Assembly (NCBI GenBank): GCA_011109175.1
Contig: RDEW01000023.1
Coordinates: forward strand, 62,001 to 126,000
From: Dicyema japonicum
Lineage: Eukaryota > Animalia > Dicyemida
DNA: 64,000 nt
Direction: 5' to 3'
In this document: positions 10,101 to 55,576 of the stretch, in pieces
How the letters are laid out: the number at the start of each line of letters is the position of its first letter
How positions within the stretch are numbered: position 1 is the first letter of the stretch
Notes under the pieces: model-generated
What the model saw: the letters and a program-made list of their open reading frames with translations, nothing else
Told to the model about the DNA's origin: nothing
Databases searched by the model: none
Made by a program: the position numbers and the translations under genes

Positions 10101-13100
10101 TGAGGAAAGTGATAAAGTTGATATAATCGTATAAAATAGTTTGAATTGGAGATAAATGAAGTAGAAACAGCGGTATATTACATTGACCGATTTGATCGTC
10201 CATCAACAGAATTGTATAGTCAGAGCATCATTAAGGAAAAGTCATTTAAACAACTGACCGCCAAATTGACGGAAATGTTTGATGCTGGGGGTTTGAATTC
10301 TTCTGGGATCCAACAACTGGTTTTATCGTCTAAATATTGTTCAGCTTGCAAACATATCTCTAAGATTGGAAGTACTCGGTAAGAGTCACGAACTTCAGCA
10401 CAAAGCAGCAAACCTAATATTGGACGATGACTACAGCATGGTAGTGTTATTTGTCATTGGACTTAGTTGAACGAATGGTATGAATATGCTCTTAAGAGAG
10501 GATTTGGAGACCCAATCAGTTGTCCTCACAATTATCAGGAATGTCAGATAGCAATTGACGAAGCGATCAATCAGTCGATCGAACTTAAGGTATAAAGGCG
10601 GTAACTTTTTAGTTAAAAAACCCAATCGTTGTAAGATTGAAGCTTCTCTTGGAATCCAAAATGAAAAAGGAATCCTCAAATTATCCAAAGAATTCAATCG
10701 AAGTCGAATATATAAATTCAGTCGATGAACTTGTCCATAATTGGACTGAGATTGTTGATATGGTCGAATCCAGAAGATGTTTACTACAAAATTATAACAA
10801 TTTCCTGAAATCAAAAAATAAGGTTCTTAATATTACATCATTGTTAGTTGGTGGACGACAGCACTAAATTGGGGGATATTATTTCATTATTTTGGGACAA
10901 CCCACAGTTAGCCACAGATAGAGCTATTTTGAACGTAAATGCCGAATACACGAGAATATCCAGGGCCATCTACGACGTCTGTGAAGAAGGAAACAACATT
11001 GAACTTGAGATGGTATATTCCTTCCTTAATTACTAAGACAAACCAAGGAATGGATCCACAAAACCTCACCAATTCCATAGAAGAGCTGCGGGACTTGGCA
11101 ACTAAACTAAGTGAGATTATGGGCTTCCTAACAGTCTCCCAAGACGAGACTTTGTTAGAAGAATGGAAGAACTTTTCGGAGGAATGTCGTAATGTTGGGA
11201 TATAATATTGTAACCCCCAATAGTTGGTTTATACGATTAAAGAGAGTGAGATGTTCATTATGCCCCGTCACATCGATGATAATGATCCAGATGAGACGAT
11301 TAGCTTATGCAGGGACATTTTGACAAAACTTGACGCTTCAGTCAGGGTATAATGTGAATTAGAGGGTAGAAAACGAGATCAACTGTGACTGAGTATTTGA
11401 CGAAGGCAGATAATATGGGAGGACTCAAAAATGATGGAATCGACATCCTTAGCGAAAATTTACATACAACATTCACAGAATATGAGAATATGGTGAATGA
11501 GCATGCTAGTTTTATTTCACAAATTGTTGATTACTGTACTCAGCTGAAGAAAGTATTTTGGTAATTCATTGAAGCTCCAGGAGAACATGGGTAGTCTCAA
11601 AACAACCAGTTCCCAAAAACAAGTCGAAGACCTAAAAGAGAAAATAAAATTCCAGTACGATGAACTGAATAAGGTTGCACAAATAATGCAGAAAGTATTA
11701 TTTAACTAATCCGGGATTTTCGTCGATCCCCCCATCAGGAGATGCAGGTACTGCTGGATGAATTATGGAATATTCCCGATAAAGTGACCCACTCATTCAA
11801 TATGGTGGACAAAATTGTTGTTTTCCTTAATCCTTATTATAAGCTCAATCAGCTTGATGACACTATTTATCAAATACAAGAATGGAAAAAGTTCTCTGCT
11901 CAGTCCTTTTTGTGCAATCAGGGAATCGAGAATAATTTCAGAAGCATAGAAAAGCTTTACACTGTTTGGGGGATATAACATCATTACAGGAAACTGAGAG
12001 CGATGCATTGGATTACATCGTTAGTTACTCGGATTCTGAGAACGTGAAAGAACGACTGCGGGATATGCAGACTTTGATGGAAAAGTGCAGGAATTTTGAT
12101 ATAATTTTGGAAGACTATTTCTCTGTAAAATTACAAGTAGTGAGTTTGTTAGATCAGTCGATGGGTCAAACGAGTGCGAGATGAGAACAAAGAAAGTTCT
12201 TTGTTTGAAGAGACAGAATTTTACGAGGAAAGATTAGAAAAATGTCAGCAAATGGCCTTAAACAACTGCAGTATAAAAATAATATAATTTCCATTAGTCC
12301 AGCAAGAAATCGATCAAATTGATATCCTCAAGAATGAATTCTACAGCGTTGTTAGTAAAAACAGAGAGGAGTGTAATACCTTCAAGACCGCCAAAATTAT
12401 TAAGACAAAACAACTTGCTGAATCTAAGAGTCCCCAGCAAGATCTTCTCCCTTCCTTCAAACAGGTGAATTATTGTGTAAACATTAAACTACCATTTCTA
12501 CTGTTAATATTCCTAGCATTTGTATAATGTACGTGTACTGTGTGGAAATGATGTCGCACTAGAGTGCACCCCCAGGAATTCGACTCATTTTGAGTGGTTC
12601 TTCAATGATAAACCTATCACTCAAACTCAAGTTGTCGATTCTGACTTTCCTCTCTGCCAATTGCTTATAAAACAGGTCAAAGTCGCTGATTCGGGCACAT
12701 ATGTGTGTCAGATAACAAACTCTCACGGATCCGCAAACACTAGCTTTATTGTTGATGTTCAGAGTATTATATTTTAATAATCTTAGAAATTAATTCCACC
12801 GATGAGTCTGATTTTCCGGGGATGTCTTGGATACCACTACTGAACAGAATGTAGGGTCCCCATATTTATGCTACTAGGGTTTCGTAGAACAAATGGAGAG
12901 GCGAATCCTTGGGAATATCAATAAAATGGTCCCCCATTACATAATATGCTATAAAAAACATATTGAGAATTTCTCCCCCAAGATTTACTCCCTCAGATTA
13001 GAAAAACATCCAAACAAGCAGTCAATTGGCTGCTTTATATATGGAGGAGATAATTCAAACGTTTATATCTATTGCAGTGGCAAATATGTGGAGAAGGATC

Positions 13101-16100
13101 AAATAGTTTCCATAAATCACTCCGAAGATGGATTTTTTGAAGTAATCCTTAAGCCAAGTCAACGAGAATGTGTTTACTCTGTTGTCGTAACTAACAAGAG
13201 TGGAAAATGCGTAGAAACTTATAAATCTGACCTATCGTTTATTGGGGAGAAACATATTAAGCCATTCTTTTGCCTCGTACCCGATAATAAAACTGTTCAA
13301 CAAAATTCCCACGAGAAGTTTACTTGTCAATGCCGAGGACTCCCTACTCCACGTGTTGATTGGTATTTGAATGGGAACATTGCCAGTCGGAATAAATACG
13401 TTAAGGTTCTCCGTGTTATTTATATTAGACAACCATGAACGACAACATGAGTTTCTTAATAATCGAAAAGGTTAATAAGGATAATTCAGGGAAGTACATG
13501 TGCTTTGGGAGTAATTCTACTGGTTGCGACCATTTCTCCCTTGACTTAACTTATTCTGGTTGATGACTTAGTAATTTTAGAAAATGTCCCCATCAAACCA
13601 TTTTTTAGACAAAGTTTGAAAAGAACAGAACTTAAAGAGAAGGAAAATCTTTATTTACAAGTTGTGGCAGGGGGGAATCCATTCCCAACATTCATTTGGA
13701 AGAAGGATGGTGAGGTTCTGAATGAAGATGAGAAAATAAAGTATTAACTGATTATGTGATTTTAGAATTGAGTCAGTTGGAGAAATGTCTCGTCTTATTA
13801 TAATGGAAGTTAAGGTTGAAGATTCCGGATTATACCAATGTTACCTCAGGAATGAATGTGGGGGACAATTTTGTGAGACTAAAGTCAAAGTTAATGGTTT
13901 TATTTTTAAATAACCAATCAGAAGTTTACCAACCAAAACTTGATAAATTTTACAAGTCTAAAAACCAAAGTAGTAAAGCCGGGGGACTTTCTTTTTCCGA
14001 AAAAGAAGAGATCCAGCAAATTTCTGAGCCCCAAAACGTCTTTTCAGTTCCATTTTTCAAATTTCTTCCTACGAATTGCACCATTACGGAAAATGAAGGG
14101 AAGGCCTTTACGGTTCACTGTGGAGGGCAACCAGCCCCTAATGTCACGTGGGCCATCAATGGGAAGAAACTCGATAATGTTACTTTTATATTTATAAAGT
14201 AGAGTCGAAAATATGAAATCATTAACGATGGATTCATATCAAAGTTAATAATTAGATCAGCCACGATGGAAAACTCTGGGACCTTGGAAATAACAGCATC
14301 AAACGAATGTGGGACGATTACAAAGTCGGTTATCATTCAAGTTGATCCCAAACACGACTTCTACAGACATCTGAGAAGCTCAAAGCAGATGTCGGAACGG
14401 TTTGAAATTTACTTAAAATAGAAAACGACCCATTTTTGTGGATCAAATTCATTCAGTTGAGACGGAGACGACTTCTAAAATGATTTTGGAGTGCCGATTA
14501 GAGGCTATTGACAACACTGAAGTCACATGGATGTTCAATGGATATGACATTGAGGAATATTCAGGGAAATATCAAGTTGAAACTAAAAATGATGGAACTT
14601 GTCGACTTTTGGTGAACGAATTGTCAGAGAAGGATGGGGGAATCTATGCTTGCTATGCTTCCAACAGGAAAGGAAGCGGTCTTATAAAGGCCAATATAAG
14701 TAGTTTTTGGATATTACTTAGAAATGTCAGACATGAGCAGTTCATTGGAACCAAAGTATCCTCCAATTAACTTGAAAAGGGGGGATTTCGTGGAATTTCA
14801 ATTAGGAAATCCTTCATACAACACGGTGCTCTCGTGGTTTGTAACGGCGAATTACTAAACTTAGGAGACGTGAGGGAATGAATGAAAAGACAATATGCCC
14901 AAGAAAGAACGAGGGGAGTAACTTATTTTCAATAATGAATGTGGATGACTCAAGTGGAGGGATATACAATCTAGAACTAGAGGATAACACAAACAAGTGC
15001 ATTATTAGAATGTCATTGGAGTTGACAGGTTGTCAATTATAACTAATTTGATGTACGAATAAGTGCATAGGATAAAGTAAATTAGCTATGAAATTATACC
15101 GTAACAGCAATATAGTGCAAATATTTATAGATTTATGATGTTGGCGTAAAAATAAAACAATATAATCAATTTCGGCAGTATAATACTTTAGCAACAAGGG
15201 TTAAGGCAAAATATGTTTGTTAAGGAGATTGACCTCCCATTGGTGTCAATGTATTGCAATATTGCCTACATTCGCTTGCATGCTAATGTGAATACTCTCC
15301 ATGCTTCCCTGCAACAATCTAACCTTGGTATTATTAATATATCATTTTCTTATAATTTATGTTGGTTTTGTGGTAAATTCTCCATTTTATTATCGATTTT
15401 TCATTTTTAGGAAAAGGGGATCAAGAATATGACTTTGTTCTCAAAATCAGTCCCAAAAACATTTCAGAGTGGGAATCTGATGAATTCACTTGTGATGTTA
15501 TTAGTAAACCAAAACCCAACGTGAGGTGGTTCTACAACGAAGACGAACTGGAGGGCTTCGGCAATTTCGTTTACTTTACGGTTTTATTCATAAATTGATT
15601 AACATAGAAAAACTCAGAACACAACATAGGAATAACCGATAAACCAAAACATTTATTTCAGGAACCAATATATGCTCGTGACTCTGACAACCTCGTAAAG
15701 TACTACTCCTCGATTGACGTCACAGGTTGTAGTTGGGGGTTTATGCACAGCAAACAAGGATAAACAATTTCCCCCTAAATTTATGATTGCAATAACCACG
15801 TCGGTCAGCGATAAAGCAAAATTTGAGACGAGAATATCAGGAAAACCACTTCCAGAGGTCACATGGTATAAGGATGGCGAAGAAATGAACACCAGTCAAC
15901 GCCGTTTTCTTGAATATGGGCAGGACGGTCGTGTTTCTCTCGTTATATTGGACATCTCCACAGATGATATTGGAAAGTATACCTGCATTGCTCGCAATCC
16001 TATGGATATGATATTACAGAGACATCCCTTGACTTACCACGTGATATATGGGAGATTATTTTATAGAAAAGAAAGTTCAAAAGATATCAGATGAAGAAGC

Positions 16101-19100
16101 TAAATTCAGTCCCTATCGTCAAAAGGACATAAAAATGTAGATTTTATGGATTAGTCATAGAAAAAGCGAAAACAGAATACTGAACAAAGAGAAATCAGTT
16201 TTTACAGGTAAAAGTATGATTTATTCAGAAATGAAAACTCAAGAGGAGGTTAGGGTTGAACCTGGTACTCTTCCAAAGCTGCAAACGTATGACGAAAATT
16301 TAATTATTTTAATAGGATTTATGACGTAAAGATAAATTTAGGAAGTTTTGAGAGAGAAGGTAGGCTCTACTTAATATTTAAGTTTCAGGGAATACCGAGG
16401 ATTCGTATGAAATACATCACAGTGATGTTAAACCAAAGAGTACTTTGGATGTGAAGAAGGATAAGTTTGTCCCCTATACTCCCGACAGTGGTATTCGTTA
16501 TACAGAATGTGAAGAATCGGTTGAAGAGATTGAATATCCTTTTGAGGATGAATCTCTGAGAGAACGAAAATATACTTCCACTTCCTTTTCATCAGATATT
16601 CCTGAAATTCTAAAAGGAGATGATCTTCCAATGACTTTCAAAGGGTTAGTCGAACAAAAAAGCTTTGAGGCAATGAAGATTCATAAACCAAAGGGATACG
16701 TAGGACAACATCCCCTTCAGCCAAAAGAGTCAGCCAATTTTTTCGAAAACCTCCAAGAAAGTGACCCCGATGATAATAAAAAAGAAAAGATCTCTTTCAG
16801 TCAAAGTGTATCATTTGAAGACCGACCGAAATCGTCTCAAATGTCCGTCAGAAAAAAATTTATAGGAATCAAGGGTGTGGATCCTTCTAATAAAGAAGAA
16901 ATGGATTCATTTGGAGAGGATGATATTCCAACCCCCACAGACTTAAGAAACATTGAGATAAAAACAGTCGAATTGCCGGAAAACCCAATTCCATTAACGA
17001 TTGAAACTTTGAGGTCGAAAGAAACCCAGAAAAGAGATGATTTTCCGAAAGAACGAATTGTTCTTAAAGAGACCGGAGTGATAAAACAGGAAGATTTTTC
17101 GAAACTACCAGAATTCAGTCAGAAATATACAACCTCGTTGGAAAAGAGAGACCCTCGAAAATTTGAAGAAATAGGTAGAAACACTGAAAAAGATGTCAGA
17201 ATTGTCTTTGGGGATCAATCTAGGTTGGCTTTACTATTAGTGAATTATTAGTGATAAAACCCCTCAAGAGATCAAGAAATATACAACCTCAGTGGAAAAA
17301 GATCCTCAGAAACCTGATGAAAAGGGTGGCTGGCATGAAAAAGATGTCAGAATTGTCTTTGGGGATCAGACTAGGTTGGCTTTACTATTTGTGAATTATT
17401 AGTGATAAAACCCCTCAAGAGATCAAGAAATATACAACCTCAGTGGAAAAAGATCCTCAGAAACCTGATGAAAAGGGTAGCTGGCATGAAAAAGATGTCA
17501 GAATTGAATTTGGGGATCAGACTAGGTTGGTTTACTATTGATGAATAATTAGTGGTGGATCCCTTCAAGACATAAGGAAATATGCAACATCTTCGGAAAA
17601 GGGAGACCTTCGAAAATTGAAGAAATAGGTAGAAACACTGAAAAAGATGTCAGAATTTTAAATGAGGATCAATCTAGGTTGTCTTTACTATTAGTAAATT
17701 ATTAGTGATAAAACTCCTCAAGAGATCAAGAAATATACAACCTTACTAGAAAGAGATCCTCGGAAACCTGAAGAAAAGGGTAGCAGGTATGAAAAAGATG
17801 TCAGAATTGAATTTGTGGATCATACTAGGTTGGTTTACTATTGATGAATAATTAGTGGTGGACCCGCTCATGAAATCAAAAAGACAACATACGAAACTTC
17901 AATTAGCGGTTTATATACTCTAATTAACTTGTGAATAGAATCAACGTTAGAACCGATATCCGATGATGAGATTCCCTATGCTCGACAGGACTCATCAGAT
18001 CCAACAAAGCTTCCACTATTTCCTCAAATAAGGAGTGATTCCGATAATAATATATTGTATTTTTGTTTTACATTTCAGTATCAAATGCCAAGACGAGTCC
18101 CTTATAACTGAAGATTCGATTCAGGAAGATCAGAGTGAATATGGTTTGTCTGTAAACTGATTGTAGATGTCATAAACTATGAGATTGTTCATAAAGATGA
18201 TAGTAATACTACAATCCAGACGACTGTAACAACGTCAACTCTTGTTGGTCCTCATGAAACCCAACACGATTCTAGCTTTGAATTTTGGTTGTTGGTTGAC
18301 TTATTCTCTCAGTGATTCCCGCAAGCTAAGCACTGATGAGGAAGTCAATGACTGCGACAAGTCAAAACCATTTATGAACTCCATTATAGAAACAAGTAAA
18401 AGACCAAAGTACTACCAACCCCTGGATGGTACACAATCGATCAATATTATAGTAAAAGAGCACGTGACAGCCCCACAGTTGTCCTCTGATTCTGGAATGG
18501 CTCAGAATATTAGTCTTGATTCCATCAGTAGTAATCTAATAAAACAATCCTCCAAGAAAGCAGGCAATAAGGCAGGTTACAGTCCCCTCGACTCTGTTAT
18601 GAATGTATTATTTCCTACAAATTATAGTTCACACGTCGATTGAGGAATATTAGAATCAAAGAGAAAAGTACGGCTGAATTTGTGTGCGAGTATTCCTCTG
18701 GATATGCGAAATCCTCGTGGTACCACCAACATTCCCTCGTTGATCTCGATACTGGAAAATATTGTGTTTTAAACAGCCACCGTGTTTGTCGACTCCAAAT
18801 ACGAAATGTTCAAGTGGGTGATGCCGGAGAGGTGGAATGCATAATAAATGGGAGATCAACAATCGCCCGTCTCATTGTAGAAAGTATAATTATATTTTTA
18901 GTATTTTAGAATTGGTGGATGTGTTTAGAACGAAATTAAGTAACCAGTCTGTCCATATTGGGAGTCCGGCACGTTTTTGGGTAGAATTGGAGGCTGATGG
19001 CGTGGGAGTGGATTGGATGATTAATAATCAACCCCTTACTGATAATATGGAAGGGATCTCCATTACAGAGAATGACTCATTCCATTATTTGACGATTGAA

Positions 19101-19531
19101 AATGTTAGTAAGGATGACCACGCCAAGATTGTTACAGCTCAAAGTCTTAATTTCAGTACATCAGCAATGATAAATGTGAAGGGTACTACTAATGAGTGTT
19201 TTTAGGTTGTGAGGAGACGTTGGTAGTAATTCGTAGAATGGAGGGTTTTCTGGCATATCCTCACGAAAATGTTGTCTTTATTATTGAATTCTCCCGTCCT
19301 TGTCACAATGTTAGTTGGTACCACAAGGATAAGCTGATCGTCCCTAATCTTACAAAATATGAGAGATATTGCGATAATGGAATTCAACATTGTCTTATTG
19401 TGTCGAATGTGGACAAATCCGACTCTGGGACATATTTCGTTTATTTCGAAGACTCAGGATGTGATCAAGCGGATCTGATTGTACAGGACCCTAGGATGAT
19501 TGATGAATTCAGTCACATTGAGTTTGACTAA
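7129..19531 (+). CDS. Giant modular protein: N-terminal CRAL-TRIO/SEC14 domain, spectrin-like helical repeats, many Ig I-set domains with a charged repetitive spacer (zormin/sallimus/titin-like architecture)
   Basis: Exons 1-4 give FFTGVRESLGNDLLFIPS..EDIDRFFNYI..FSIIVD..VYMIEP, resembling the Trio/SESTD1 SEC14 domain. Helical L/E/K-rich exons 8.1-12.4 kb. Ig motifs such as LECTPRNSTHFEWF..DSGTYVCQITN, FETRISGKPLPEVTWYKDG..DDIGKYTCIARN, DSGTYFVYF. Dozens of 22-29 nt introns plus one ~380 nt intron (~15030-15410). A single continuous gene is inferred from frame continuity in the parts checked. Confidence 0.78.
17100..17860 (+). repeat. Internal tandem exon+intron repeat, ~151-nt period, 5 units
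   Basis: Near-identical introns start at 17224, 17375, 17526, 17678 and 17829 (gttggctttactattagtgaattattag / gttggtttactattgatgaataattag). Exons of ~123-126 nt encode DKTPQEIKKYTTSVEKDP..EKDVRI..GDQ. Confidence 0.92.
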
Positions 19532-20279: not shown

Positions 20280-21600
20280 TAGTTAATTGTGCTTTTCCAA
20301 CTTTTTTTGTTGACTTTGGTTGGCTGGAACGAGTCCGAGCGGCTCTAATTTGACAGGAAATCCAGCAGCCTCAAGTCCCCAAGCAATAACTCCGTTGATT
20401 GCGGCGTGTCTTGGACTCCTTCCAGCACACCTCCGACAGGAAAGAGCGTGAAGACCTTTCGCGTCGATTATTCCTCCACATCTACAGGGATGGATCATGC
20501 AAAAATCTATTCGAGGCAGACTGAAACTCCAATCTTTGTCGCGTCGTCCTCCAATAGTGTCCCAAGTGAGGTGCATGGTAGTGCTCTGAACCAGGCATCA
20601 CTTTCGTTCGTCGATGCAGAAGCTAGACAAGCCAGACGATGCTGGTCAGGTATTATCTTTCTATAATCTTTGAGCATAAAAGCTTGTCCCATTGTTTATT
20701 AGCGTTCTTCCGGAATCCCACACTAAGTCGCATCCAGACTTCCCGAACCATGCATGCCACTGGGTTAGCATCCGATCTGTTAATGTAGCGTCGGATCTGG
20801 CGTGTGAGACCATTGGAAGCATATGTCAAAGATAGAAAAACTGAGAGGGCGAGTTTTAGTGGTGAGCGTATTCCGATTCCTCCGTAGTGAAGCGATAGTT
20901 TGCATTGGATCCATCCAGTTTTATCAAAAGAAATGTTGAGTGTTTCTTAAACGGCAGTCTCAGCTTCTCGCCGATGGCTCTTAAGAAGTTTCTTGTCCGT
21001 GAAACATGGGGGTATCCGTAAAAAAAGAGTCGTAAGGTGAAAATTCCCGAAAAAGAATAAAGACGTGTGGGAGTCCAGGGATTTTAAATTGGATATGAAT
21101 AGTTATACTCTGGTCTAACGGTTTTATCTCAAACATATTGTTCGATGCTGACTTTGAAGATTTAATTATTATGAATCACGATTGACAAGTGAAGAAGTTA
21201 AGAACACCTTAATGTTTATAATCATGCTCGGAACCGGATTAGAACTCATAAGCAAAAAGAAGTTAGGAACACCACAAATGTCTTGTCCTTTGATTAATTA
21301 GAATAACAGTTCTTTACTTCTTAAATAGAGTGTGAGTTCTGCTAAGTTGAGATGAGTAAAGGAAACATTACTAGTCGTTGGCGGAAAGGCAGAATTATTT
21401 TTTATTTGAAATCATGAGGAGATAAGAGAAAACTTACTCCTTAATGACTGGTACACAAGACATGTTTGCAGACTTTAAAGAATTTCTAAAGTAGTTAAAC
21501 AATTTCCAAACTGGAGAACTAGTGGGATAAGACGTATATATTCTTTTTAGAGGAATCAATTCATGTCTGTAAAGAAGACCACCTCTGTAAAAAAGTCATC
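20280..21600 (-). mobile_element. Decayed CRE-like non-LTR retrotransposon (RT C-terminus + restriction-like endonuclease)
   Basis: CRCGGIIDAKGLHALSCRRCAGRSPRHAAIN..EPLGL, LASASTNESDAWFRALPCTSLGTLL, GWIQCKLSLHYGGIGIRSP. Same family as 40.6-43.1 kb. Confidence 0.75.
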
Positions 21601-21604
21601 AAAA

Positions 21605-24360
21605 TATTATTATTACCCCAGGATTACTGGGTCAAAGAGAAAGAATAAAAGTTCTCATCTAACTAAGTGATCCCAGACCGACAAAGAAGAGGACGAATCC
21701 GGCGGGGTCGAGAATTCTGAACAGCTCTTCTCATTGGACATGGCATCGGCTCAAAATTTCTGTATGATTGTAGATATTTCGATGGTGTATGGAATAGAGG
21801 GCAGCTCGGTAGCCTCCTTTAATAGTTTCCGTTGTATTCGATTAATAATTTTTAATGGGCTGGATTTGTGTTCTGGTCCAACTATCCTTATTGCAGTCTC
21901 CTCGAATGTGGATAGTTTCAATGAAGATCGTGAAATCTGCATTGCCCACGAAGGACTTGCATACGTCATCGTGGGTAGGATAAATTGTTGTAAATCGTGG
22001 CAAGGACACCAGTTTGATCTCTAAGTGTTTGAGAGCACTTTTAAAATTCTCATTTTTTTCAGAGCAGAAGTTACTTTGTTTTCAACATGCCGGATAAAGG
22101 TGAGTCCCTGATCAAAGGTTACTCCAGAATCTTCGGTGTTTTGTTAATAGAGATAGCTTCGTTCTTCATAAAGACTTTTGGTTCGATACAGAGCTGTCTT
22201 TGTAGTGGTAAACAGTGTGACAAAGGACTTTGCTGCTGATGTGTCTCTCCGCTTCGAGAGCCATAGTTCCAAGTTGTCGAGCATTTGTTGAGAACTGAGT
22301 CGCTGATTGAATGCTTCTGTCTTGGAAAGAATGATGTATCGTCGCATAGGAGAGGATTAGACAGTTTTCATTACAGGTTTGTGGCATCGTTTATGTAGAG
22401 ATTGAAGAGTTGTGAAGTGGGGAGCCTTGAGGACTCCATTTGGGAAATAGCGAGATTTTGATTTGATGTTGTTGCATAGTACTTGTGCTCGTCTTCCATT
22501 TAGGAAGTTTACAAGCCAAAGTTTCAGGTTCGGATGGATGTTGGTTTCAATATTTTCTTTGTTAGGAGTTTCCTAGGGACTGAGTCGAACGCTTTTGTGA
22601 TGTCCACGGATATAAGTACTGTCCTCTGATGGGTTTGGGGGAGTTAAATCCTTCCGCAATGAATTGTGTGATTGTAAGGTGTGTTGGTCGAATGGTTGTC
22701 CCGGAATCCGTGCTGGGTCGGAGGTATTGAGATTGAGTCTTGTATTTTTTCCAAAACAAGCCTTTCAAGGATCCTTGAGACCGGACTTAGAATAGATATT
22801 GGGCGATAGGAAGATGGTTCATCTATTGGTTTGTTGGGTTTTCGGATAGGTCTGATTAGAGACTTCTTCCATATTTCAGGGATTGTATTTGTGTTAATGG
22901 ATAGGTTGAATATATAGGCTAATAGTTCCAGGGCTCGATGGCCTAGGTGCTTCAGTTCACATGTGGTTATGTTGTCTGGTCCTTTGGCCTCTGAGTTGTT
23001 GGCCTTGGATATGGCTCTGCGAACATCCTGACTAGTAAATAGGATCCAGTCATCGGAGCGTTTCGGTTCAATCTTTTTCAGGAATACTTGGTGTTCTTTT
23101 GAAAACTTCTTGTAGGATATAGACGTGTAATATTTTATCAGAGTGTCTGGTTTTATGTAGACTTCGACTTTTCTCTCTGGGGAGGATCTTTTGATGTTCT
23201 TGCTTCACTTCCACAGTGTTTACTTGGGGATTTTTTGTAGAGAGCTTTCGATAGTTTAGTCTATCTATTTGCATTTTCTTCCTTTATGTTGTTGTCGATC
23301 TCTCTGTTCAATTGTCGAATTTTCCTGATGTTCTCATCTGTTTGCGATTTTACCATCTTTAGATTATTTCGTTTTCTGATCTGATGTTTCGTCGTTGTGT
23401 TAAGACGCTTTGATAACGTTGGTTGTCTGCCCATAGGAATTTACTTTTTTTTGCATCGTTTATAATGGAGTTGAACCATTTCACTAATTATTTGCCGGAG
23501 GGAAAAGTGAGTAAATTTAAAATTCCAATACAGTTATCAACGTAATCCTTGAATCCTCTCCAATTCGCAAGGCTGTAGTTAGTTATCTTGGGATATTGTC
23601 CTTTTATCCGTGACCTCGTTTTGACCTTCAAAAATATTGGTTGTGGTCACTCCTGGTGTCATACTTCACTGACCAGTCAATAAGGGGCCAAGGACGGTGA
23701 TGACAGTGAGATGTCGATAGAAGAAGGTTTATCGTTACTGTGTTCTTGTATGGGAAGCAGGATCGTTGAGTATACATAGGCTGTGGAGGTCCTCAATTAT
23801 CATCTTCCCCTTTTTGTGGGTGAAGTCACCACAGATAATCACATCTTCCAGTGATGTGAGAGGAGTCAATCTGGGAGCACTGGAAGCAGGAACTCACGGT
23901 GGGAGATATGCGTTGATCAATATTATTGATAGTCTTGGGAATTGTACTTTGGTAACCACAAGTTCAAGATTTCCAAATCCTTTAAACATACTGTAGACAC
24001 TGTTAGTTATATCCTCAAACGGAATGCCGTTGCGAATTACTGTGAGAAGACCCCCACCAAGTTTGCCAATTCTGTCACGGCGAATTACTGTGAATCCCGG
24101 AAATACTGATGTTGAATTCTTCGAGAAAAGTTTAGACTCTTGGATTGATGTGATGTTCTTTCACAAATGTCCGAAGTTCGAGTATCTTGTTCTTGATTCC
24201 ATTTATGTTGAGTTGGACTATTCTGGCTGGTCCAGGGTTTGCCTCAACGTCTCCGCAGCGTCGCAGGCCTTCCTTATTGGTCACCCGTGAAGATAGGAGA
24301 AAGTTTGGTTCTTTTCTTCCAAATGCCACCTCGTTGTCGCCGAGCCACATGACATTTCTC
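21605..24360 (-). mobile_element. Near full-length, decayed Ingi/Vingi-like LINE: 5' ribozyme-like module, 2A peptide, APE endonuclease, RT, no RNase H seen, (TAA)n tail
   Basis: GLRRCGDVEANPGP followed by ARIVQLNINGI (APE start), RRDR..GGGLLT, ICGDF. RT motifs KAFDS, GVPQGSPLSP, SYAxxI, KILGVTFDQGLTF. 3' end GACCCAGTAATCCTGGGGTAATAATAA. About 2.75 kb. Confidence 0.85.
24228..24254 (-). other. 2A-like ribosomal skipping motif GDVEANPGP
   Basis: Exact match to the D(V/I)ExNPG-P consensus, in frame and directly upstream of the APE domain. Confidence 0.88.
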
Positions 24361-24459
24361 AAGATGAATCGAAAATTTGTAGAAAATTTGAGTCATACGT
24401 TCAGCGACGATCAATCGAGAATCCTAAGGACGAGTCAGGGAGTTAAAGAACAGATAATA

Positions 24460-25665
24460 CTTAAAATTCGAATAGATGGACGAGACTATCGAAGGTTCTC
24501 TTAGGAACTCCACTATGCAAAGAGTATGGAAGTGGATCAAGAAGAGAAAAGGCGGGTCTATATCCAACCCGACAGCCTCATAAAATATCATACTTATTTC
24601 TCCTACAAGGAGTTTTCTAAAGAACACCAAGTATTCCTGAAAAAGATTGAACCGAAACGCTCCAATTACTGGATCCTCTTTACTAGCTAGAATGTCCACA
24701 GAGCCATATCTAAGGCAAAACTCAGAGGCCAAAGGACCAGACAACATAACCGCATGTGAACTGAATCTTCAACCTATCCATCAACATGAACACACTATTG
24801 AAATATGAAAGAAGTCTATAATCAAACCTATTCGAAAACCTAACCAATGAACCATCATCCTATCGCCCAATCTATTTTGAGTCAGATCTCAAGGATCTTC
24901 GAAAGGCTTGTTCTGGAAAAAGTACAGGATTCAATCTCAATACCTTCGACCCAGCACGGATTCTGGGTAACCATTTGTAACCCTCACACAATTTATTGCA
25001 TGAGAATTTAACTCCCCCAAACTCCATCAGAAGGCAGTACTTATATCTGTGGACATCACAAAAGCGTTCGACTCAGTCACTAGAAAACTCCTTACAAAGA
25101 AAATATTTGAAACCAACATCCATCCGAACTTGAAACTTTGACTTGGAAACTTCTTAAATGGAAGACGAGCACAAGTACTCTACAACAACATCAAATCAAG
25201 ATCTCGCTACCTTCCAAATGGAGTCCCTCAAGGCTCCCCACTGTCACAACTGTTCATCTCTATATTTACTACATGCCACAAACCTGTAATGAAAACTGCC
25301 TAATCCTCTCCTATGCAGACGACATCATTCTTACCTTCAAGGACAGAAGCATTCAATCACCGACTCAGTTCGCTCTACAAATGCTTGACAAGCTGGAACT
25401 ATGGCTCTCGAAGCGGAGACACATCAACAACAAAGTTTTCTGTCACGCTGTTTACCACTTACAAAAGACAGCTCTATGAACCAAAAATCTTTATGAATAA
25501 CGAAGCTATTCTTATTAACAAAACATCGAAAATTCTTGGAGTCACCTTTGATTTGGGACTCACCTTTATCCGAATGTGAGAACTTCTGCTCTGAAAAAAT
25601 GAGAATTTAAAAGTGCTCTCAAAAACACTTAAATACCAAACTGGGATCCTTGCCACTGTTTACTT
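24460..25665 (+). mobile_element. Truncated second copy of the Ingi/Vingi-like LINE, inverted relative to 21605-24360
   Basis: Matches the reverse complement of ~21980-23290 (gaacaccaagtattcctgaaaaagattgaaccgaaacgctcc; atgccacaaacctgtaatgaaaactg). YADD motif at ~25310. Confidence 0.85.
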
Positions 25666-32153: not shown

Positions 32154-32462
32154 CCGCGTGGCGCCATGTGGTGCTGCGTGGTTAATTGATTGAAGTTTTC
32201 TACTTGCTTGTCTGTTCCTCCTCTCTCTTCCTATTAGAGTGGCGTCATGTGATCCACTTGTCTAGGTGACGCCTAGTGCCAGGTTGGCACGAAAAGGGAT
32301 CATTTGCTCCTCCCCACTCCACTGGAGGGGTTTCCACAACTGCATGTAATGGACGTCTTACCTTTTATGCTGATTCCGGATGGACTCTGTAGAAGTGGAA
32401 ACTGGATACACTTAATTAGTTGTTTACTTTAACTTCTTTCTCGGTGTATCCGGGGTTAATAA
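32154..32462 (+). mobile_element. SINE-like element family A, full-length copy with ribozyme-like module (32241-32302)
   Basis: Colinear with 39043-39353 (minus) and the partial copy 55470-55576. Ends ctcggtgtatccggggttaataa. Confidence 0.82.
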
Positions 32463-32744
32463 ATTAAATTAAATTCCATATTAACGGAATATTGCTCTCG
32501 TGTTATTTTCACTATCACTGAAGGTCCCAGGTGCTTCAGTTCGGGAAAAGAGACGACGAGTTATTAATTTTCCTTGGTCACTGAATGCACCCTAAAGTGG
32601 TCGAAAATGTTATGTTGGGGGACTTCCTGAATCCACTATGTTATGACTACAAAATTAAATGAAATTAATTGTAATATAATTTTAGTACCAAATTAATAGG
32701 TTTATTAAATAAATAAAATAAATTAATAGATTAGTAACCAAGTA

Positions 32745-37700: not shown

Positions 37701-39042
37701 ACTTCTCATCAAGCGATTATAATTCGATTCTCTTAGTAATGGCTATAGGACTAATGCTTAGTTACCGTTCTGAGATTTATTTAATCTTAGAAAAGGATTT
37801 ATTTTAATTCGACCATAAAGACAACTGGTCTACTATGTGAGCAAAAGATCTTATGGGACAACTCATCTTTTATATAAGGAGAGGAAATTCTTCACTGAGA
37901 AACCACCTGCGTAGACTGATTCTTCCCTTCCAACACGGCTATTCACATGGGATAGCGCTTTGAAGACAGTTCTCCCTCAAACTAATTTGGGTATAAAACC
38001 TCGGGGTTGATTAGCGCAATTCCCTCGTTCTCTTACAAGATATAGGATCATTATTAACCAGAAAAGAGACAGTCGTGAAAAGGAATGGCTAATAGTGCAA
38101 ATTCACTACTTGGTTATGGCATCATAAGTAGTTACTGTTTAACATTTTACCACACTTTATGACTAGGCAATCACTTTTTTAACCTTAAAATTAAAAAATT
38201 TAACATTTTCAATTTAAACAATAAAAGACAACTTTTGTTTTAAAGACTATTTATTGAAAATAGACATTACGTAATTTTCCAGATTTAGTGTACAAAAGTT
38301 TCTGTTTGTCCTCAAAAAAACTCTTGAATTGCGAAAAACATCTTTCGACAGATACCGAGGATGGCTGACAATATAGATGGAACGAATACATTTTTACATT
38401 TCATATTAATAATTTTAGTTAGGTCGCTTTCCAAACTTCTCTTCTACAAATATTTTTTGACCCTTGTTTCATCTTTCCCAAAATCTATTGCACTAAGCGT
38501 CGAATATGCGTACTCTATTATACACTAGTTACTTTCAAATTGTAATATTTTTCTGTGATAATTTACTATATAAGAACAACCTGGAATATGTGAATAGTTA
38601 TGCGAAATGGCGCATAAGCTCTACTATTTTTTCACTTTTCAATGCATTCTTCGTAGAACTACTAAAGTACCTTCGTCCTCAATTAACTCAGAAATGTTAA
38701 TCACTAGGATTAAATTTTTTGATTAAAAAGATGCAGCCTTCAACCTGGTACCCCATCTCGTCAATACGACTTTGGGAGGAAATTGTTTTTCGGAAAACAA
38801 AAATTTTATTCAACATCATTTACATTCTGAAAGGGGTGAATTACCCAATCTGGAACTTTGAGTTAACATAAATCTTTGAAAAGTCCCTTCATATCTTGTT
38901 CAAGAGTGATCAAATGTTCAATATAAATTTCAAAATCATTTTCAGAAAAGAAGTTTTTAAGACCACTGAGACGTGGAAATTGGATTAATTCTTTCCTGCC
39001 AATATTCCTACAAAATAAAGGTATTTTCGAAATTTTAATTTT

Positions 39043-39353
39043 TTATTAACCCCGGATACACGGAGATAGAAAGTTAAAGTAAACAACTAATTAAGTGTAT
39101 CCTGTTTCCACTTCTACAGAGTCCACCCGGAATCAACATAAAGGGCAAAAGACGTCCATACTTGCAGTAGTGGAAGCCCCTTCCAGTAGAGTGAGGGAGA
39201 GCAAATGATCTTTTTTCGTGCCGGCTTGATACTCGGCGCCACCTAGACAGGTGGATCACATGACGCCACTCTAATAGGAAAAGAGAGGAGGAACAGACGA
39301 ACAAACAGAAACTTCAACCAATTAGCCACGAAGCACCACATGGCGCCACGCGT
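39043..39353 (-). mobile_element. SINE-like element family A, full-length copy with ribozyme-like module (39206-39267)
   Basis: Reverse complement aligns end to end with 32154-32462; possible TSD tttcgaaa on both flanks. Confidence 0.82.
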
Positions 39354-39639
39354 TTCGAAATAAAAGTAGAAATAAGTGACTTTTCCTAAATTAATTTAAA
39401 AAAATAATACCTTGATTAAATTAATATCAGAAAATTGTAATTTCAACATAATAAACAGAAAGGTCGTCTTTCATCACTAGGAAATGTGATGAAACCATAT
39501 TTTAAATATTTTAGAGTCCAGTGGGCTGTCCTCACGGCATGCCAGTTCTACAAGTTGGGAGGTAGCAGAGGCGTAATCTTCATCGTATACCTTCATACCA
39601 TGCTTATGTTCAATGAGCATACTTTCGAGCGTTCTCTTC

Positions 39640-45420: not shown

Positions 45421-45512
45421 AAAATTATTCCAAAGGGTAAAACCAAACTAACAAACTCCTTTCACCAGAACTTGTCTCCAGGTAATGAAATTTTTTCTTG
45501 ATGGAAAGAAAA
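45421..45512 (-). mobile_element. 5'-truncated copy of SINE-like family B
   Basis: ttacctggagacaagttctgg..ttgttagtttggttttaccctttggaataatttt matches the family B 3' half. Confidence 0.7.
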
Positions 45513-45652: not shown

Positions 45653-46821
45653 ATGGATTTGGTAGCTGCTTTGAAGAATCGTGTTAAATCTTACAAAAAC
45701 GACGATTTTTACGGAAAGTTTAACCACTATTATGGAGTCACACTACTCGCCTTAATATCCGTGATCATCTCCACGAAAAACTTGGTGGGAGACCCAATCC
45801 ACTGCTGGTGCCCAATACACTTTACGAGTAATTAAATTTTGTCATTTTCAGGCGATATGGTGAGATATGCAGAACAGTCTTGTTTTACTGGGGGAAGGTT
45901 TTACTTCAACTCGGCTGTAAAGGAAGACAACTTGGAATCTGTTATATCGGGGAAGTTTTTCCATTGGATGATTTTGATTACCATACTTCTTGCCTTACTG
46001 TATCGACTGCCGTATATTCTTTGGTGTCGCACGTGTTCAGTCAGCGACATTAATGTTAACCAAATTATTGAATTATCAATAAAATGTGGAGATGTTGATT
46101 CTGAACAGAAAAAATCAAAAGCATTCAACATTTTATTCGAGTATTTTGCAAAATATAGAAACTCAAGAATGGAGATGGATTTCGAGGGACTTGCAAAAAA
46201 TAAAATTATAAAATTTATTTATGTCCAGTCAAGAAAATTTAATTCAATTTCATCAATGTATATTCTGGTAAAATTCATGTACTTTGTAATCACGTTGTCT
46301 CAGATTGTCATTATAGAATATTTTGTTATATGGAAGACAAAAAGCAGTTTCAGTGAAGTTATGTTTTGGGATTTCATTAAAGTCATTAAGAATGTGGAAA
46401 CAACGTTTTTTCCTCGATCTGTTTTGTGTAAATTTGACTCCAAGGAATTGGGTCACATTGAGACTCCTCGAACGCACACAGTTGAGTGCATTCTCCCTAT
46501 AAATCAATATGCACATATTCTCTTTACTGTGTATTGGTTTTATCTCCTCTTTGGGGGTATAATCAACTTTATTGGAATTTCGAAGTGGATCTGGTACCTC
46601 TGGTTCAGATGTGTCCACCAGGGATACCTGATTTCACTTCTGGTGGAAAAGAACTCCATTTTCATAAGAAATTTTTTATTAATTCTTATTTGAGTTACGA
46701 CGGCATTTTTGTTATTCGATTGGTGGCGGACAACACAAGTGATCTTTTTGTCAAGAAACTGGTCTCCAAATTGTTCGATAAATACATGGAGTCCGCCCAG
46801 ACATATAATTTTAAATGTTGA
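45653..46821 (+). CDS. Innexin (gap-junction protein)
   Basis: DDFYGKFNHYY..VGDPIHCWCP|24-nt intron 45828-45851|..QSC, FPRSVLCKF, CILPIN, YLSYDGIFVIRLVADN. One 1-nt frame break near 46670. Confidence 0.92.
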
Positions 46822-48621: not shown

Positions 48622-49767
48622 CTAATAATTATTATTCCTGGAATCCATCAATACAGTATGAAGGATTACATCAACCACTGCATAAGGGTCACAATTTGCG
48701 GCAGGACGTCTGTCTTCCAAATATCCGCAACCCTTTTCGTCTACTTCCATAGGGACTCTTATGGAAGCCTTCCTATTGGCGACTCCGAAGGAAAAATGAT
48801 CGTAGCTGCTTGTCTCACAGGTACCAATTAGTCTTTTATAGTTATCCTTTCCCCCATTTCCGTCGTATACTTCCATGTGAATGCTATGATTCTTCTCCAT
48901 CTTTCTTATTGCCGCATATATGTGGTTGATACCATTTTCTTGGCGCATCAAATTTGTGCTAAAATTCACGTGCGCACCAGCTCCATTCCACGGGCCTTCA
49001 ACTGGTTTTGGGTTTAATGTGGCAATCACTCCAAAGTCTTCACAAACTCGTTGGAGAATAAACCGAGCCATCCAAAGATGGTCACCGATTTCGATCCCGC
49101 CACATACTCCAATCTGAAATTCCCACTGTGAAGGCATAACTTCTGCGTTTGTTCCGCAGATTTTGATCCCTGCATAAAGACAAGCCTTATAATGGGCCTC
49201 CACAATCTCCCTACCAAAGGAACGATCAGCTCCGACACTGCAGTAGTAGGGACCTGAAAATTTAGAATCCTTTCCACCTTGGGGCAGTGGAAAACCATTT
49301 TCAGGCCACTGATAAGGACGTCCATTGACTCCCATTAATGTATACTCCTGCTCTATGCCAAAATAGGGCTCGTAAGATTTACAAAATTCTGTGGTTTTTA
49401 AACATTTGTTTCGTAAATTGGATTCTATTAGTAAATTATATAAAATGACTTGTGGGTTCCAAATTTGGATAATAAGTTTCACAGAGGACCAATATATTGC
49501 AAGGAGGCAAAAAGGGATCTTTAAAAATAGCGACTGGTTTTATGTAAACGTCAGAATTTGAACACGTTGATTGTCCTGTGCTGGAACCATCAAAATTCCA
49601 GATCGGAAGTTCTTGGGGGACTTGACTTGAAAGTCAATAGTCCGAGACTTTGATCTGAGGTTGTTCTCAGCGTCAATCCAAATGTAGGTGGCTATAATTT
49701 GGTTTTCTGGCTGATGAAGTCGCGAGTACTTCTCCCAAACCGAGACTTTGCTGCCTACCTTATCCAT
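48622..49767 (-). CDS. GLUL: Glutamine synthetase (type II)
   Basis: [67 protein letters not shown]-like [36 protein letters not shown]. 25-nt intron 49425-49449; two 1-nt deletions in homopolymers (~49505, ~49615). Confidence 0.95.
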
Positions 49768-50957
49768 GTGATACGATCCTGTAGTCAAACTGAGTTTTAT
49801 ATTTACGCTAAATCGACTTATTAAGCTTTCTAATTAATGCGGTTATCACTGAACGTATTGGATTATTATCATACTTTCAAGGCTACGTATTTTGTGAACG
49901 CTCATTTTTGTTATTTTATTGCTGAAACTTTTATCTTCAAAAATTGGCGGGTAATTCCTTAGTAATTTGTTTTATCAGATGACGTCTTAAATCTGACAAA
50001 AAATTTTCAAGTGAAAATAAAACCCTTAAGTTACAAATTATTTTAATTCGATAAGTTAATTTACAATGTTCCAGTGTGGATTGGTTTACCACAAAATTAA
50101 AGGACTTTAGTGATAATTGCACATTATCGTGAAATCTGCATTCGTGACAACATTCGTATAAACTAAATCCTCTTAATTAGTCGCCTTTTGATTATTTTCT
50201 CGCAAATCATCTAAACTCTGTGAACACACGTGATCGGTGACTCTTTAAAGAATATTTAATATATAGAGTACCAATATTAGTCCTGACCTATTTCAGTGAT
50301 TTTTAAGAAGTTAAGGTTCATTTGTTTGCAAGTAAAAAACACTGCTAGTAAATTCTAATTAGGTACTCCAGAGACTCACGACTCTTCAGCCAGAAATCAT
50401 GCACTATTTCCTCGTTTTAAATTTTCCTGCATAATTTGAACCTTACAGCATTTTATTGGGCTTCAAATCAGTAAATCAACTCCATTAAGTCGAATCCCTG
50501 GATGAATATCTAAACGAGATACCTTAGCAGTAATCAGCAAGCCATCTGTTCTATAAGTATATAATACGTCATATAAATTCTAATTGAATTTGATTATTCA
50601 AAATAGAAAAAAATAATCTATAAACTCTTTCTCAAGCAAATTTATCACTAAAGCTTGAATACAGAATTCAAATTTACAATTACTGGGCACATGATCGAAA
50701 GAAACGATCTTCGACACCACAGAGTCGTCTTTGAAAGAAGGAATCTCTGAGAGGAATAATCCAGTCTTGTGATCGATTCGTCCAAATGGAAAGGACTCCT
50801 GCAATCTACGCGCGTATCGCATTCAGTTACTAAAGTTCCTTCGTGAAAGTCCATTTCGTGTGAGTGGTGAAGCACATAAGCTTACAAAAGTTACTTCCAG
50901 AGAGTGCAACAGATAGATCATCTGTTAGGTTGATGAATTAACTCTTAATTTATATTA

Positions 50958-51182
50958 TTATTAACCCCCTCACAATGGTAAGCCCAGCACAGTCAAACTA
51001 ATTAATCCAAGGAAGAAACCCAAGGAAGAATATCTTCTTTACCAAACCCATCTTCCAATAATACATTACAGGCTTCCGCTTCAGAAGAGTGGTGGAGAAG
51101 TAGGTCCGCCCTCTTCCATTTTCATTACACGTCCTACCGTCGCGGAAATCACTTTATTCTTTAGCGCAATAGTTTTCATAAT
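50958..51182 (-). mobile_element. Family C 3' fragment, copy 2
   Basis: High similarity to 163-410, including the GGGGT(TAA)n end. Confidence 0.7.
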
Positions 51183-51323
51183 CTCTACTATAGAATTTAG
51201 TATTAATTTTGAAAAATAAAACCCATGTTTTTCGCAGCAGAATTTTTATAATTAAAATAATCTTAATATATCGAATTTATATTTTTTAAATAAATCTTAG
51301 TAGTAATCTTAAGTAGTTCCATT

Positions 51324-51549
51324 ACGCGTGGCTCCATGTGGTTCTACGTGGATATTTGTCAAAATTATTTTCCTTCCTTCCGATGGCGTCAATGGATCCA
51401 CCTTACTGATGAGGCGCCCAATGCCTGGTCGGCATCAATAGGATCCAACAATTCTTCCCCGGGGACAACGTCGTTACCTGAAGACAAGTTCTGGAACGAG
51501 TCTGGATCAATGAGTTAGTTAGTTTGGTTACCCTTTGTCTTTGGAATTT
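51324..51549 (+). mobile_element. SINE-like element family B, full-length copy with ribozyme-like module (51385-51446)
   Basis: Three 10-bp-phased cNNNgtgg repeats, pyrimidine tract, structured module, 3' end ttaccctttgtctttggaattta. Confidence 0.78.
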
Positions 51550-53300: not shown

Positions 53301-54599
53301 TGAAAATACTTTTTAATAATAATATGCCAACAGCAATTGATGGCAAGTTTGAAATATCAATCTACTGTCTCTTGGTGTTTTAGGATTATTTGTTCAAGGG
53401 AAATGGATGAAAGTTTGTCCTTGATGCATTAGTTTATTAGCAGTGGTATCAATAGTGAATCCAAAATAAATAAGATAGCAAGGAAATTCAATTTCATGAG
53501 TCACACTATAATGTAATCATAGAACTCAGTTTTTTCAGTGGTAGTCATCAATTTGGAACTAATTTATACAATAAAACTTGCAATGCACTTTGCTCCAATC
53601 ACAGGTTGTTAGGTGGGGGGCCTTTTCTCATTCAAAATTTAAATAATGAATGACCTCATCTAATCGGGTACCAATATCAGACCATGATTTGACCACCAAA
53701 TTTTCATTTATACTTCGTTTTTTGTAAGTATAATATAGACCTAACCAAGAGATAACGATTGAACATAAATCTGACTAGAAACAGAAGCAAAGTGATTGAG
53801 TTTTTTCAATCCGTTTAAATTAGATTTAAATACAACACGATAAGGCAAAGAACAAATACCACAAAGGCAAAGTTGAGAAATTTTTAATGAAACTCAAATT
53901 TAATTTGCAATATCGATTTCCTATGTAATTAATTTCTGACGAGTAGTTGATCCTTATTATTTTATTCCGCAAAAATAAATTCCTAGACTTTCAAATAAGG
54001 TACAAGTTTTTGTACGTCGTAATCTCTGGTTAAATATAAATTATTAGATCCAATCCATGTGGAAAAGAGCAATGCCATACGGAACACGTGGGGAATCTAG
54101 AAATGATTGGGAAAATGAATTCCAAAATTGTCTTCTTTGTTGGTAAGGTGGGGGACTCTATTGATAGTGGAAAACGAGCTAAAAATTCATAATGAAAAAT
54201 GACATCTATAACTTCTTAAAGATATACATTTTTAATAAGTTTTTTTAATTTTTACACAATTTTTGCCATTAAATTAATTAAAATTATTGTCCTATTTATT
54301 ATCCTATTTTACGTCTCCACTTTTCCTTACATAGATTGTGATCTTTACTATCCCTGCATATTAACCCCACATATACCTGAAATAGGTTTTATCCATTTTC
54401 TCTGGTTGTAGTGGAACGTACCTCTCCAAGGATTATTGGAATTAAAGAAGAGAGACCTTCTTGCATGCCGCCCAGATATTGGACGTCTCCTGTTAAGTAG
54501 ATCTAACGACGTCTCTAGGAATTAAAGGAGGCAAAAGGAACAAAGTAGTCTTAGCAATATAACTTGACCATCTTATTTTATGTATTAATCAAAGGCCAC

Positions 54600-55300
54600 C
54601 AGTGGCCTGCCTAGGGACGGTGGACATAGGGGCAGCCTCCTCAGGGGGCATAAGATCCATAAAGTTCACACTATTAAGTTGTACTCACTTGTTTCTCAAT
54701 GTTTTTTCATCATACACAAAATCGACTGCTAGTGATCACTTTGTTTTATTGACAGCCCTGAAGACTTCGAACGTACTGGTTTTAATCGATGGCAGTTGCG
54801 TGTTCGCTGTGAATTCCCTTATCGCCCATTGTGATGAAAATCAGTGACCTTTTTGTTATGAGGATGTTACTCTTGCGAAGCATAACGTGCGAAGTGACGG
54901 TTGTTTTTCCTTGCTACAGTTTTCTGTTTTGATTTCCTCTAATTGATCTTACAAATGAAACGAATACAAATCGCCACAAGAAATAGCTCAGAGAAGATAA
55001 TGCCATGAGAGGCTGTTTGATGAAGAAGCGACACGTGGCAAACGATCAATCGGATGCTGACAATTTCGAACCCGCGGCTGTCATCCAAGAGGGCATCATA
55101 AATCCAGTGATCACATAACTCTATACTGATGGTGATAATCAGAATGCAAATTCTTAGCAAAAATTGATTCCAGATGACGCTGATGATTTTAATTATAATA
55201 CAGCTTTCACTTTTAACTATGAAGGCAACGACATCGTTGAATTTTTATTATTTCGTGACCACGACTTTGGGCGTTTAACCGATTTCCACATATTTAATTA
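54600..55300 (-). mobile_element. hAT DNA transposon remnant with terminal sequence
   Basis: CAGTGGCCTGCCTAGG..GGGGC terminal-like GC-rich end at 54600; degenerate LRIxxxI..SIE C-terminal motif on the minus strand. Confidence 0.45.
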
Positions 55301-55469: not shown

Positions 55470-55576
55470 TTTATTATTAACCCCGGATACACCGAGAAAG
55501 AAGTTAAAGTAAACAACTAATGAAGTGTATCCAATTTCCACTTCCACATCCGGAATCAACATAAAAGGTAACGTCC
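55470..55576 (-). mobile_element. 5'-truncated copy of SINE-like family A
   Basis: ttaaccccggatacaccgagaaagaagttaaagtaaacaactaa matches family A; has a (TAA)n tail. Confidence 0.8.

Follow-up and report, generated by a model that had tools for sequence, protein, structure and literature searches.

An HDV-like ribozyme heads the LINE L1Tc and is common to the NARTc and SIDER elements (PMC3185411, PMC4035085). The 77 nt of L1Tc act also as a promoter (PMC3383444), and an internal second Pr77 signature found in SIDER2 is misfolded (PMC4035085). The R2 protein binds a pseudoknot within the ribozyme region of its own RNA, and does so independently of cleavage (PMC6765202). LINE 5' regions have also been found inside shorter elements: those of RTE and Vingi LINEs form the middle bodies of SINEs (Kojima 2018, PMC5786205), and SINE-like elements with LINE-derived 5' ends (LP-SINEs) are known in molluscs (PMC4758252). 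A working ribozyme placed behind a SINE head would truncate the SINE (Kojima 2018, PMC5786205).

In this work we focused on a 62-64-nt module in a 64,000-nt stretch of the Dicyema japonicum genome (contig RDEW01000023.1, positions 62,001 to 126,000), referred to here as the window; all coordinates below are counted from its first letter. A search of the literature found no paper describing this module. The original prediction had proposed a divergent HDV-like ribozyme family shared by two SINE families and the 5' end of a LINE. We found the module in five copies in the window, all of them within SINE-like retroposons belonging to three families (A, B and C). We give about even chances to the reading in which it serves as a structured SINE core, would be kept for its shape and would cut poorly or not at all, with an HDV-like ribozyme of a LINE as its probable ancestor.

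Four copies had been listed beforehand (A1, A2, B1 and B2), and the strings quoted for them were all found in place. Module A1 (32241-32302, plus strand) is the only one in which all four helices are free of mismatches. Its P1 pairs 32241-47 with 32267-73, P2 pairs 32250-55 with 32297-302, P3 pairs 32257-59 with 32264-66 around the L3 loop GUCU, and P4 pairs 32276-80 with 32286-90, with UA as J1/4 and GAAAAG as J4/2; P1, P3 and P4 recur in the MFE fold of the whole element. The second copy of family A, A2 (39267-39206, minus strand), has one mismatch in each of P4 (A·C) and P2 (C·A). In family B, module B1 (51385-51447, plus strand) has a P1 of 6 bp, P2 GGAUCC/GGAUCC, P4 AUGCC/GGCAU and J4/2 CAAUA, and module B2 (30122-30059, minus strand) is decayed, P2 having two mismatches and P4 two G-U pairs. 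A covariance model was built from these four modules, with P1, P3 and P4 as nested pairs, and run unfiltered over the whole window. It recovered its own four sequences and also copy C (54513-54452, minus strand), which was not in the model (34.7 bits, E 1.7e-8). This fifth copy represents a third, older family absent from the earlier list, and has P1 GACGUC/GACGUC, P2 AGAUCU/AGGUCU, L3 AAC and J4/2 GCAAGA. A second covariance model, made from all five copies, found nothing beyond these five in the window.

The host elements are ordered as a 5' hairpin, a pyrimidine-rich leader, the module, a body and a tail. Element A1 (32155-32470, plus strand; whole-element fold z = -4.56) ends in the tail GGGGTTAATA followed by an A/T-rich repeat, and is 87.5% identical to A2 over 316 nt (BLAST). 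Element A2 (39352-39034, minus strand) is flanked by a 9-bp target-site duplication, ATTTCGAAA, at 39353-39361 and 39025-39033; since this duplication encloses the head, the head of A2 lies inside the retrotransposed unit. Element B1 (51325-51547, plus strand) has a head of the same type as family A, with a different body and a different tail (CCCTTTGTCTTTGGAAT), and is 74% identical to B2 (30178-29947, minus strand). The two SINE families recognized earlier are borne out by these identities, and are joined by family C, whose element (54355-54620, minus strand, 5' limit approximate) has its leader, some of its body and its GGGGTTAATA tail in common with family A. Families A and B have in common only their first ~35 nt (85% identical) and the module. 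The module is common to three families whose bodies and tails differ.

The head hairpin of A1 (32155-32180, plus strand) comprises 11 bp, including four G-U pairs, closed by the loop AUGU, and lies 85 nt upstream of the would-be cleavage site. The same hairpin is seen at 39352-39327 (minus strand) and at 51325-51350 (plus strand). The B1 hairpin retains 9 of the 11 pairs of A1, one U-G pair having become U-A; this change between families A and B makes the head look more like an RNA element of the sense strand than like a group of DNA boxes. An origin of the head from a tRNA was considered and rejected, as ARAGORN finds none, and neither ARAGORN nor Rfam at the gathering score relates it to tRNA, 5S or 7SL RNA. 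With no tRNA-like head and no Rfam family at that score, the elements are best described as SINE-like non-autonomous retroposons whose head is not recognisably of pol III type. In family A the head also contains a direct repeat of the module start (GTGGCG[C/T]CATGTG, 12 of 13 positions; 32162-32174 against 32238-32250, plus strand, and likewise in A2). Its score was reached by only 3-5 of 2000 shuffles, and family B lacks the repeat, which may have arisen by partial duplication or may act as a strand competing for P1.

Fragments truncated at their 5' end were also seen at 55474-55579 (minus strand; positions 199-313 of the family A element) and at 45431-45488 (minus strand; positions 152-218 of family B), neither of which starts at the first G of the module. 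A fourth SINE-like family (~160-430 and 50955-51190, both minus strand) carries the GGGGTTAATAAT tail of families A and C without the module, and has a possible H-type pseudoknot of its own, GUCCGC..GGGUAGG..GCGGAC-CCUACUU.

All five copies can form the strand order P1-P2-P3-P3'-P1'-P4-P4'-P2', which is the nested double pseudoknot of HDV type. Pairing was counted over the five sequences with 7 pairs in P1, 6 in P2, 3 in P3 and 5 in P4, the J4/2 strand being re-registered by one column for families B and C. Standard pairs occupy 96 of the 105 cells (91%), against 33-47% when the 3' partners are slid by 1-3 columns, and 70% was not exceeded by any of 20000 random sets of equally sized helices. 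In order to allow for the choice of a structure after the fact, the alignment columns were shuffled 300 times and the best HDV-type architecture was searched in each; the real alignment scored 97, and the shuffled ones 68.6±3.4 with a maximum of 80 (n = 300). Four pairs in three helices show changes on both sides that preserve pairing. Pair 2 of P1 goes from G-C to A-U in family C, pair 1 of P2 is U-A in A, G-C in B and A-U in C, pair 6 of P2 goes from C-G to U-A in family C, and pair 1 of P4 is G-C in A and A-U in B and C. The proposal of a shared, foldable module of HDV order with some compensatory change in related SINE-like families was upheld. The covariation it had attributed to P1 of the four listed copies amounts to one-sided G-C/G-U/A-U change; the true double changes are found in P2, in P4 and in family C.

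These compensatory changes are few, and with only five sequences from three lineages the power to detect covariation is low. When the 3' letters were shuffled within pairs, P2 included, the observed pairing, double-change count or covariation score was reached in 9-11 of 5000 shuffles; for the nested helices alone the observed values were reached in 19-37 of 500, which is marginal, and such shuffle tests are inflated by the relatedness of the copies, most pairs being conserved without variation. The covariation term of RNAalifold is small (-1.28 kcal/mol). G-U pairs occupy 10 cells and A·C combinations 3 (one-sided p 0.046), which favours the sense strand as the RNA strand. Nested folding of single copies chose P1 in A1 and B2, and P2 in A2, B1 and C, an alternation that is expected if both helices compete in a pseudoknot. 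The proposed helices have little thermodynamic stability in B1, B2 and C, which are the older copies; there, alternative nested folds are favoured by a wide margin.

A loose single-sequence descriptor of the topology matched about 100 places in the AT-rich window, about ten of them with a pair count equal to that of A1, and 1 of 3000 shuffles of A1 came within one pair of the A1 score. Because such a descriptor fires so often, the helix order alone is not evidence, and the scan was discarded as such. What chance leaves unexplained is the coincidence of the fold with the one segment common to the three families. Two other arrangements were tried and rejected. Alternative P3 registers giving a longer L3 work in A2 only and cut P1 to 4 bp, and the use of the GGCGCC of the head as the true 5' strand of P1, with a long J1/2, leaves five conserved bases upstream and pairs poorly with P1' in the heads of family B.

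The original prediction had also described the module at the 5' end of a LINE bearing a 2A peptide. This LINE (~20280-24460, minus strand) is decayed, with many frameshifts, an RT domain, and the 2A peptide GDVEANPGP followed by an APE-like start. The segment in question (24356-24290, minus strand) can form a P1 of 7 bp (AAUGUCA/UGGCAUU) and a P3 of 4 bp (CUCG/CGAG) with a 7-nt loop. P4 is missing from this segment, the joining strand UGGAAGAAAAGAA is without a C, and P2, of 3-5 bp, is weak and overlaps P3; the segment also overlaps with the beginning of the 2A-APE frame. Local alignment of the LINE 5' region with each of the five modules stayed at chance level, covariance model R2 gave 7.6 bits (E 4.4) and Rfam gave nothing relevant, this comparison resting on the one decayed LINE 5' end in the window. 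As its similarity is at chance level and both P4 and the C of the joining strand are lacking, we do not retain this copy. The 'triple compensatory change' read in its P1 is likewise left without demonstrated homology, since neither alignment nor covariance model detected any and 7-bp stems with G-U pairs allowed are common in the window.

Next to this LINE, 24463-25199 (plus strand) is an inverted, 5'-truncated copy (78%) of its RT region (22458-23277, minus strand), so that two copies lie head to head. Of the ~100 nt between the LINE stem and position 24463, the ~72 nt from 24388 to 24459 match 35736-35665 with 74% identity. The true 5' end of the LINE is probably near 24460, about 100 nt upstream of 24356, to judge from these sequences. 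Neither SINE tail, GGGGTTAATA or CCCTTTGTCTTTGGAAT, occurs at the 3' end of the 2A-LINE in the window, and the partner LINE may lie elsewhere in the genome.

Searches beyond the window gave little. Protein word searches with the LINE N-terminus and with the reading frame spanning the SINE found nothing, an exhaustive HMMER search with the 2A N-terminus returned only unrelated multi-2A polyproteins, and the RT search outside the window reached 36% identity at best. An exact cluster look-up for eight ORFs of the window found none. A metagenome pattern scan gave GC-rich chance matches (≤20 bits), and an IMG/VR scan one chance match. Long uninterrupted reading frames were seen in the window at 45839-46693 (plus strand), 48622-49482 (minus strand), 12893-13438 (plus strand) and 18837-19531 (plus strand). 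They match innexin (E 5e-27), the glutamine synthetase catalytic domain (E 7e-19) and the Ig I-set domain, and the innexin and glutamine synthetase frames may be retrocopies or large exons.

Several features of the module fit an HDV-like ribozyme, namely the order of the helices, a 6-7-bp P1 with G as its first base, a P3 of 3 bp and an A-rich J4/2 with a C. The L3 loop of the classical and solved HDV-like members has about 7-9 nt. Here it is GUCU, UACUG, UACUA or AAC; with 3-5 nt it is too short for an HDV-like core loop and leaves hardly any linker for P1.1, and linkers have been described on each side of P1.1 in newly solved HDV-like structures (PMC13635239). J1/4 is UA, GA or CA. P1.1 can be drawn as two Watson-Crick pairs in A2 (UC with GA) and B1 (UG with CA), it combines U-A with C·U in A1 and U-A with A·C in B2, and none is possible in family C. 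It uses different loop positions in A and B, and no single register holds across the families. The caution given earlier that L3 and P1.1 are non-canonical was thus well placed, although P1.1 by itself speaks neither for nor against a ribozyme, since fast natural HDV ribozymes tolerate non-Watson-Crick pairs there (PMC13635239). In J4/2 a C is followed by A-rich sequence in every copy, and the column of this C differs between families: it is in the P4 closing pair in A, the first base of J4/2 in B and the second in C. At the gathering score Rfam has no matching family anywhere in the window, and up to E 10 no HDV-type family matched around A1, B1 and the LINE, the HDV-like models of Rfam being narrow and unable to encode pseudoknots. 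A hammerhead was also considered and rejected; CUGAUGA occurs in B1 only, the other copies having CUAAGGA or CUAGGUG there, and no Rfam hammerhead model matches.

The ends of the elements bear on the same question. A homologous head and leader of 60-85 nt upstream of the would-be cut is retained in all five copies, and none of them, nor any partial copy, starts at the predicted cut. Since this upstream sequence is kept in all five, and in A2 lies within a visible target-site duplication, the transposing RNA was uncleaved. The absence of an Rfam match, the short core loop and the retained head together speak against the module as the ribozyme originally proposed. A divergent ribozyme of a short-L3 subtype, still cutting 5' of the first G of P1 while the copies derive from uncleaved transcripts, would account for the helices, for the C and A-rich J4/2 of every copy, and for the P1.1 that can be drawn in A2 and B1. 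It has to contend with the cramped L3, with a P1.1 that is impossible in C and mismatched in B2, with a C whose column varies by family and which in family A sits in the P4 closing pair, with the negative Rfam result even at E 10, and with the lack of copies starting at the cut. We consider it decidedly unlikely and keep it among the rivals because the hammerhead SINE-like elements of schistosomes make an active ribozyme inside a SINE not impossible (PMC6765202). The stronger form of this idea, in which a still active HDV-like ribozyme of a new minimal-L3 subtype, present in very many copies, would cleave inside the transcripts of SINEs and host and take off the 5' hairpin head, is very unlikely.

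The support found for the helices, set beside the lack of support for the features of a catalytic core, could also mean that the SINE core is unrelated to HDV ribozymes, its P1/P3 and P4 hairpins and its long-range helix being convergent. No LINE homologue is detectable in the window, and foldable conserved central domains are known in SINEs, for example the Vhc stem-loop of mollusc SINEs (PMC4758252). We find this reading unlikely: all five junction lengths lie inside the HDV-like ranges or close to them, J4/2 has stayed A-rich and kept a C, a nested double pseudoknot of this exact order would be unusual to arise twice, and precedent ties the ribozymes of LINE 5' ends to short derivatives (PMC3185411, PMC4035085). 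It is also conceivable that there is no selected RNA fold, and that the module is a conserved palindrome-rich DNA segment, such as an internal promoter or factor site, whose pairability was inherited from a single ancestor. The arms of P1 and P2 are near-palindromic hexamers (GGCGCC, GACGTC, GGATCC, AGATCT) and can for this reason be read as DNA-level motifs, most pairs are invariant, and in L1Tc the same 77 nt serve as a DNA promoter (PMC3383444). The both-sided changes in four pairs of three helices, the excess of G-U over A·C, which points to the sense strand of an RNA, and a P4 that covaries without being palindromic all argue against this explanation, and we regard it as improbable.

In the reading we prefer, the SINE-like non-autonomous retroposons form a small superfamily, represented in the window by at least three families, and the module is the structured core that they have conserved. 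The sense-strand RNA would fold into a compact nested double pseudoknot in which P1 closes P3, P4 comes next, and P2 joins the inside of P1 to the 3' end. Its ancestor would most likely be an HDV-like ribozyme with which a partner LINE began, like that of L1Tc and NARTc; this ancestry rests on precedent, as no LINE in the window carries a detectable homologue. The ribozyme would have been captured behind a new 5' hairpin head and then, plausibly with loss of catalysis, been retained because of its shape and not because it cuts. It could plausibly serve as a fold recognised by the LINE machinery or used in RNP assembly, as the R2 protein recognises the pseudoknot of the ribozyme region.

If the fold is real and derived from a LINE ribozyme, it would show the fate of a self-cleaving RNA trapped behind a new promoter or head, in which the helices are retained while the catalytic loop shrinks. 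It would then argue for a second, non-catalytic job of retrotransposon HDV-like folds, in protein recognition or RNP assembly, as has been proposed for R2, and it would give a defined RNA structure and an origin to one enigmatic conserved SINE 'body'. If the fold still cuts, it would constitute an abundant internal ribozyme across introns and UTRs, relevant to RNA processing in this genome.

Among the systems described so far, the SINE-like elements of schistosomes resemble those found here in being abundant and in carrying an internal small-ribozyme motif downstream of the promoter part (PMC6765202). Their motif is a hammerhead of proven activity, whereas the elements studied here have CUGAUGA in B1 only and no match to a hammerhead model. 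The SINEs of Kojima and the LP-SINEs of molluscs have the same overall plan, with a head, a middle part resembling a LINE 5' region and a LINE-type tail; these cases rest on plain similarity to a named LINE, with no fold proposed, and no such similarity was found here. The likeness to L1TcRz/Pr77 lies in an HDV-type double pseudoknot that is present in the LINEs (L1Tc, ingi) and also in their short non-autonomous derivatives (NARTc, RIME, SIDER). The clade of these trypanosomatid LINEs carries a 2A peptide at the N-terminus, and there, too, degenerate copies are found inside elements (signature II of SIDER2). L1TcRz, however, is formed by the first 77 nt of its element and cleaves in vitro, whereas the module described here follows a hairpin head, 60-85 nt into the element, has a shorter L3 and has no LINE homologue detectable in the window. 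R2 differs in being site-specific for rDNA and in having an active ribozyme that sets its 5' end. The likeness to R2 and its SIDEs is that there the pseudoknot of the ribozyme region is a protein-binding site, which short, internally deleted parasites of the element keep (PMC6765202, PMC3414825).
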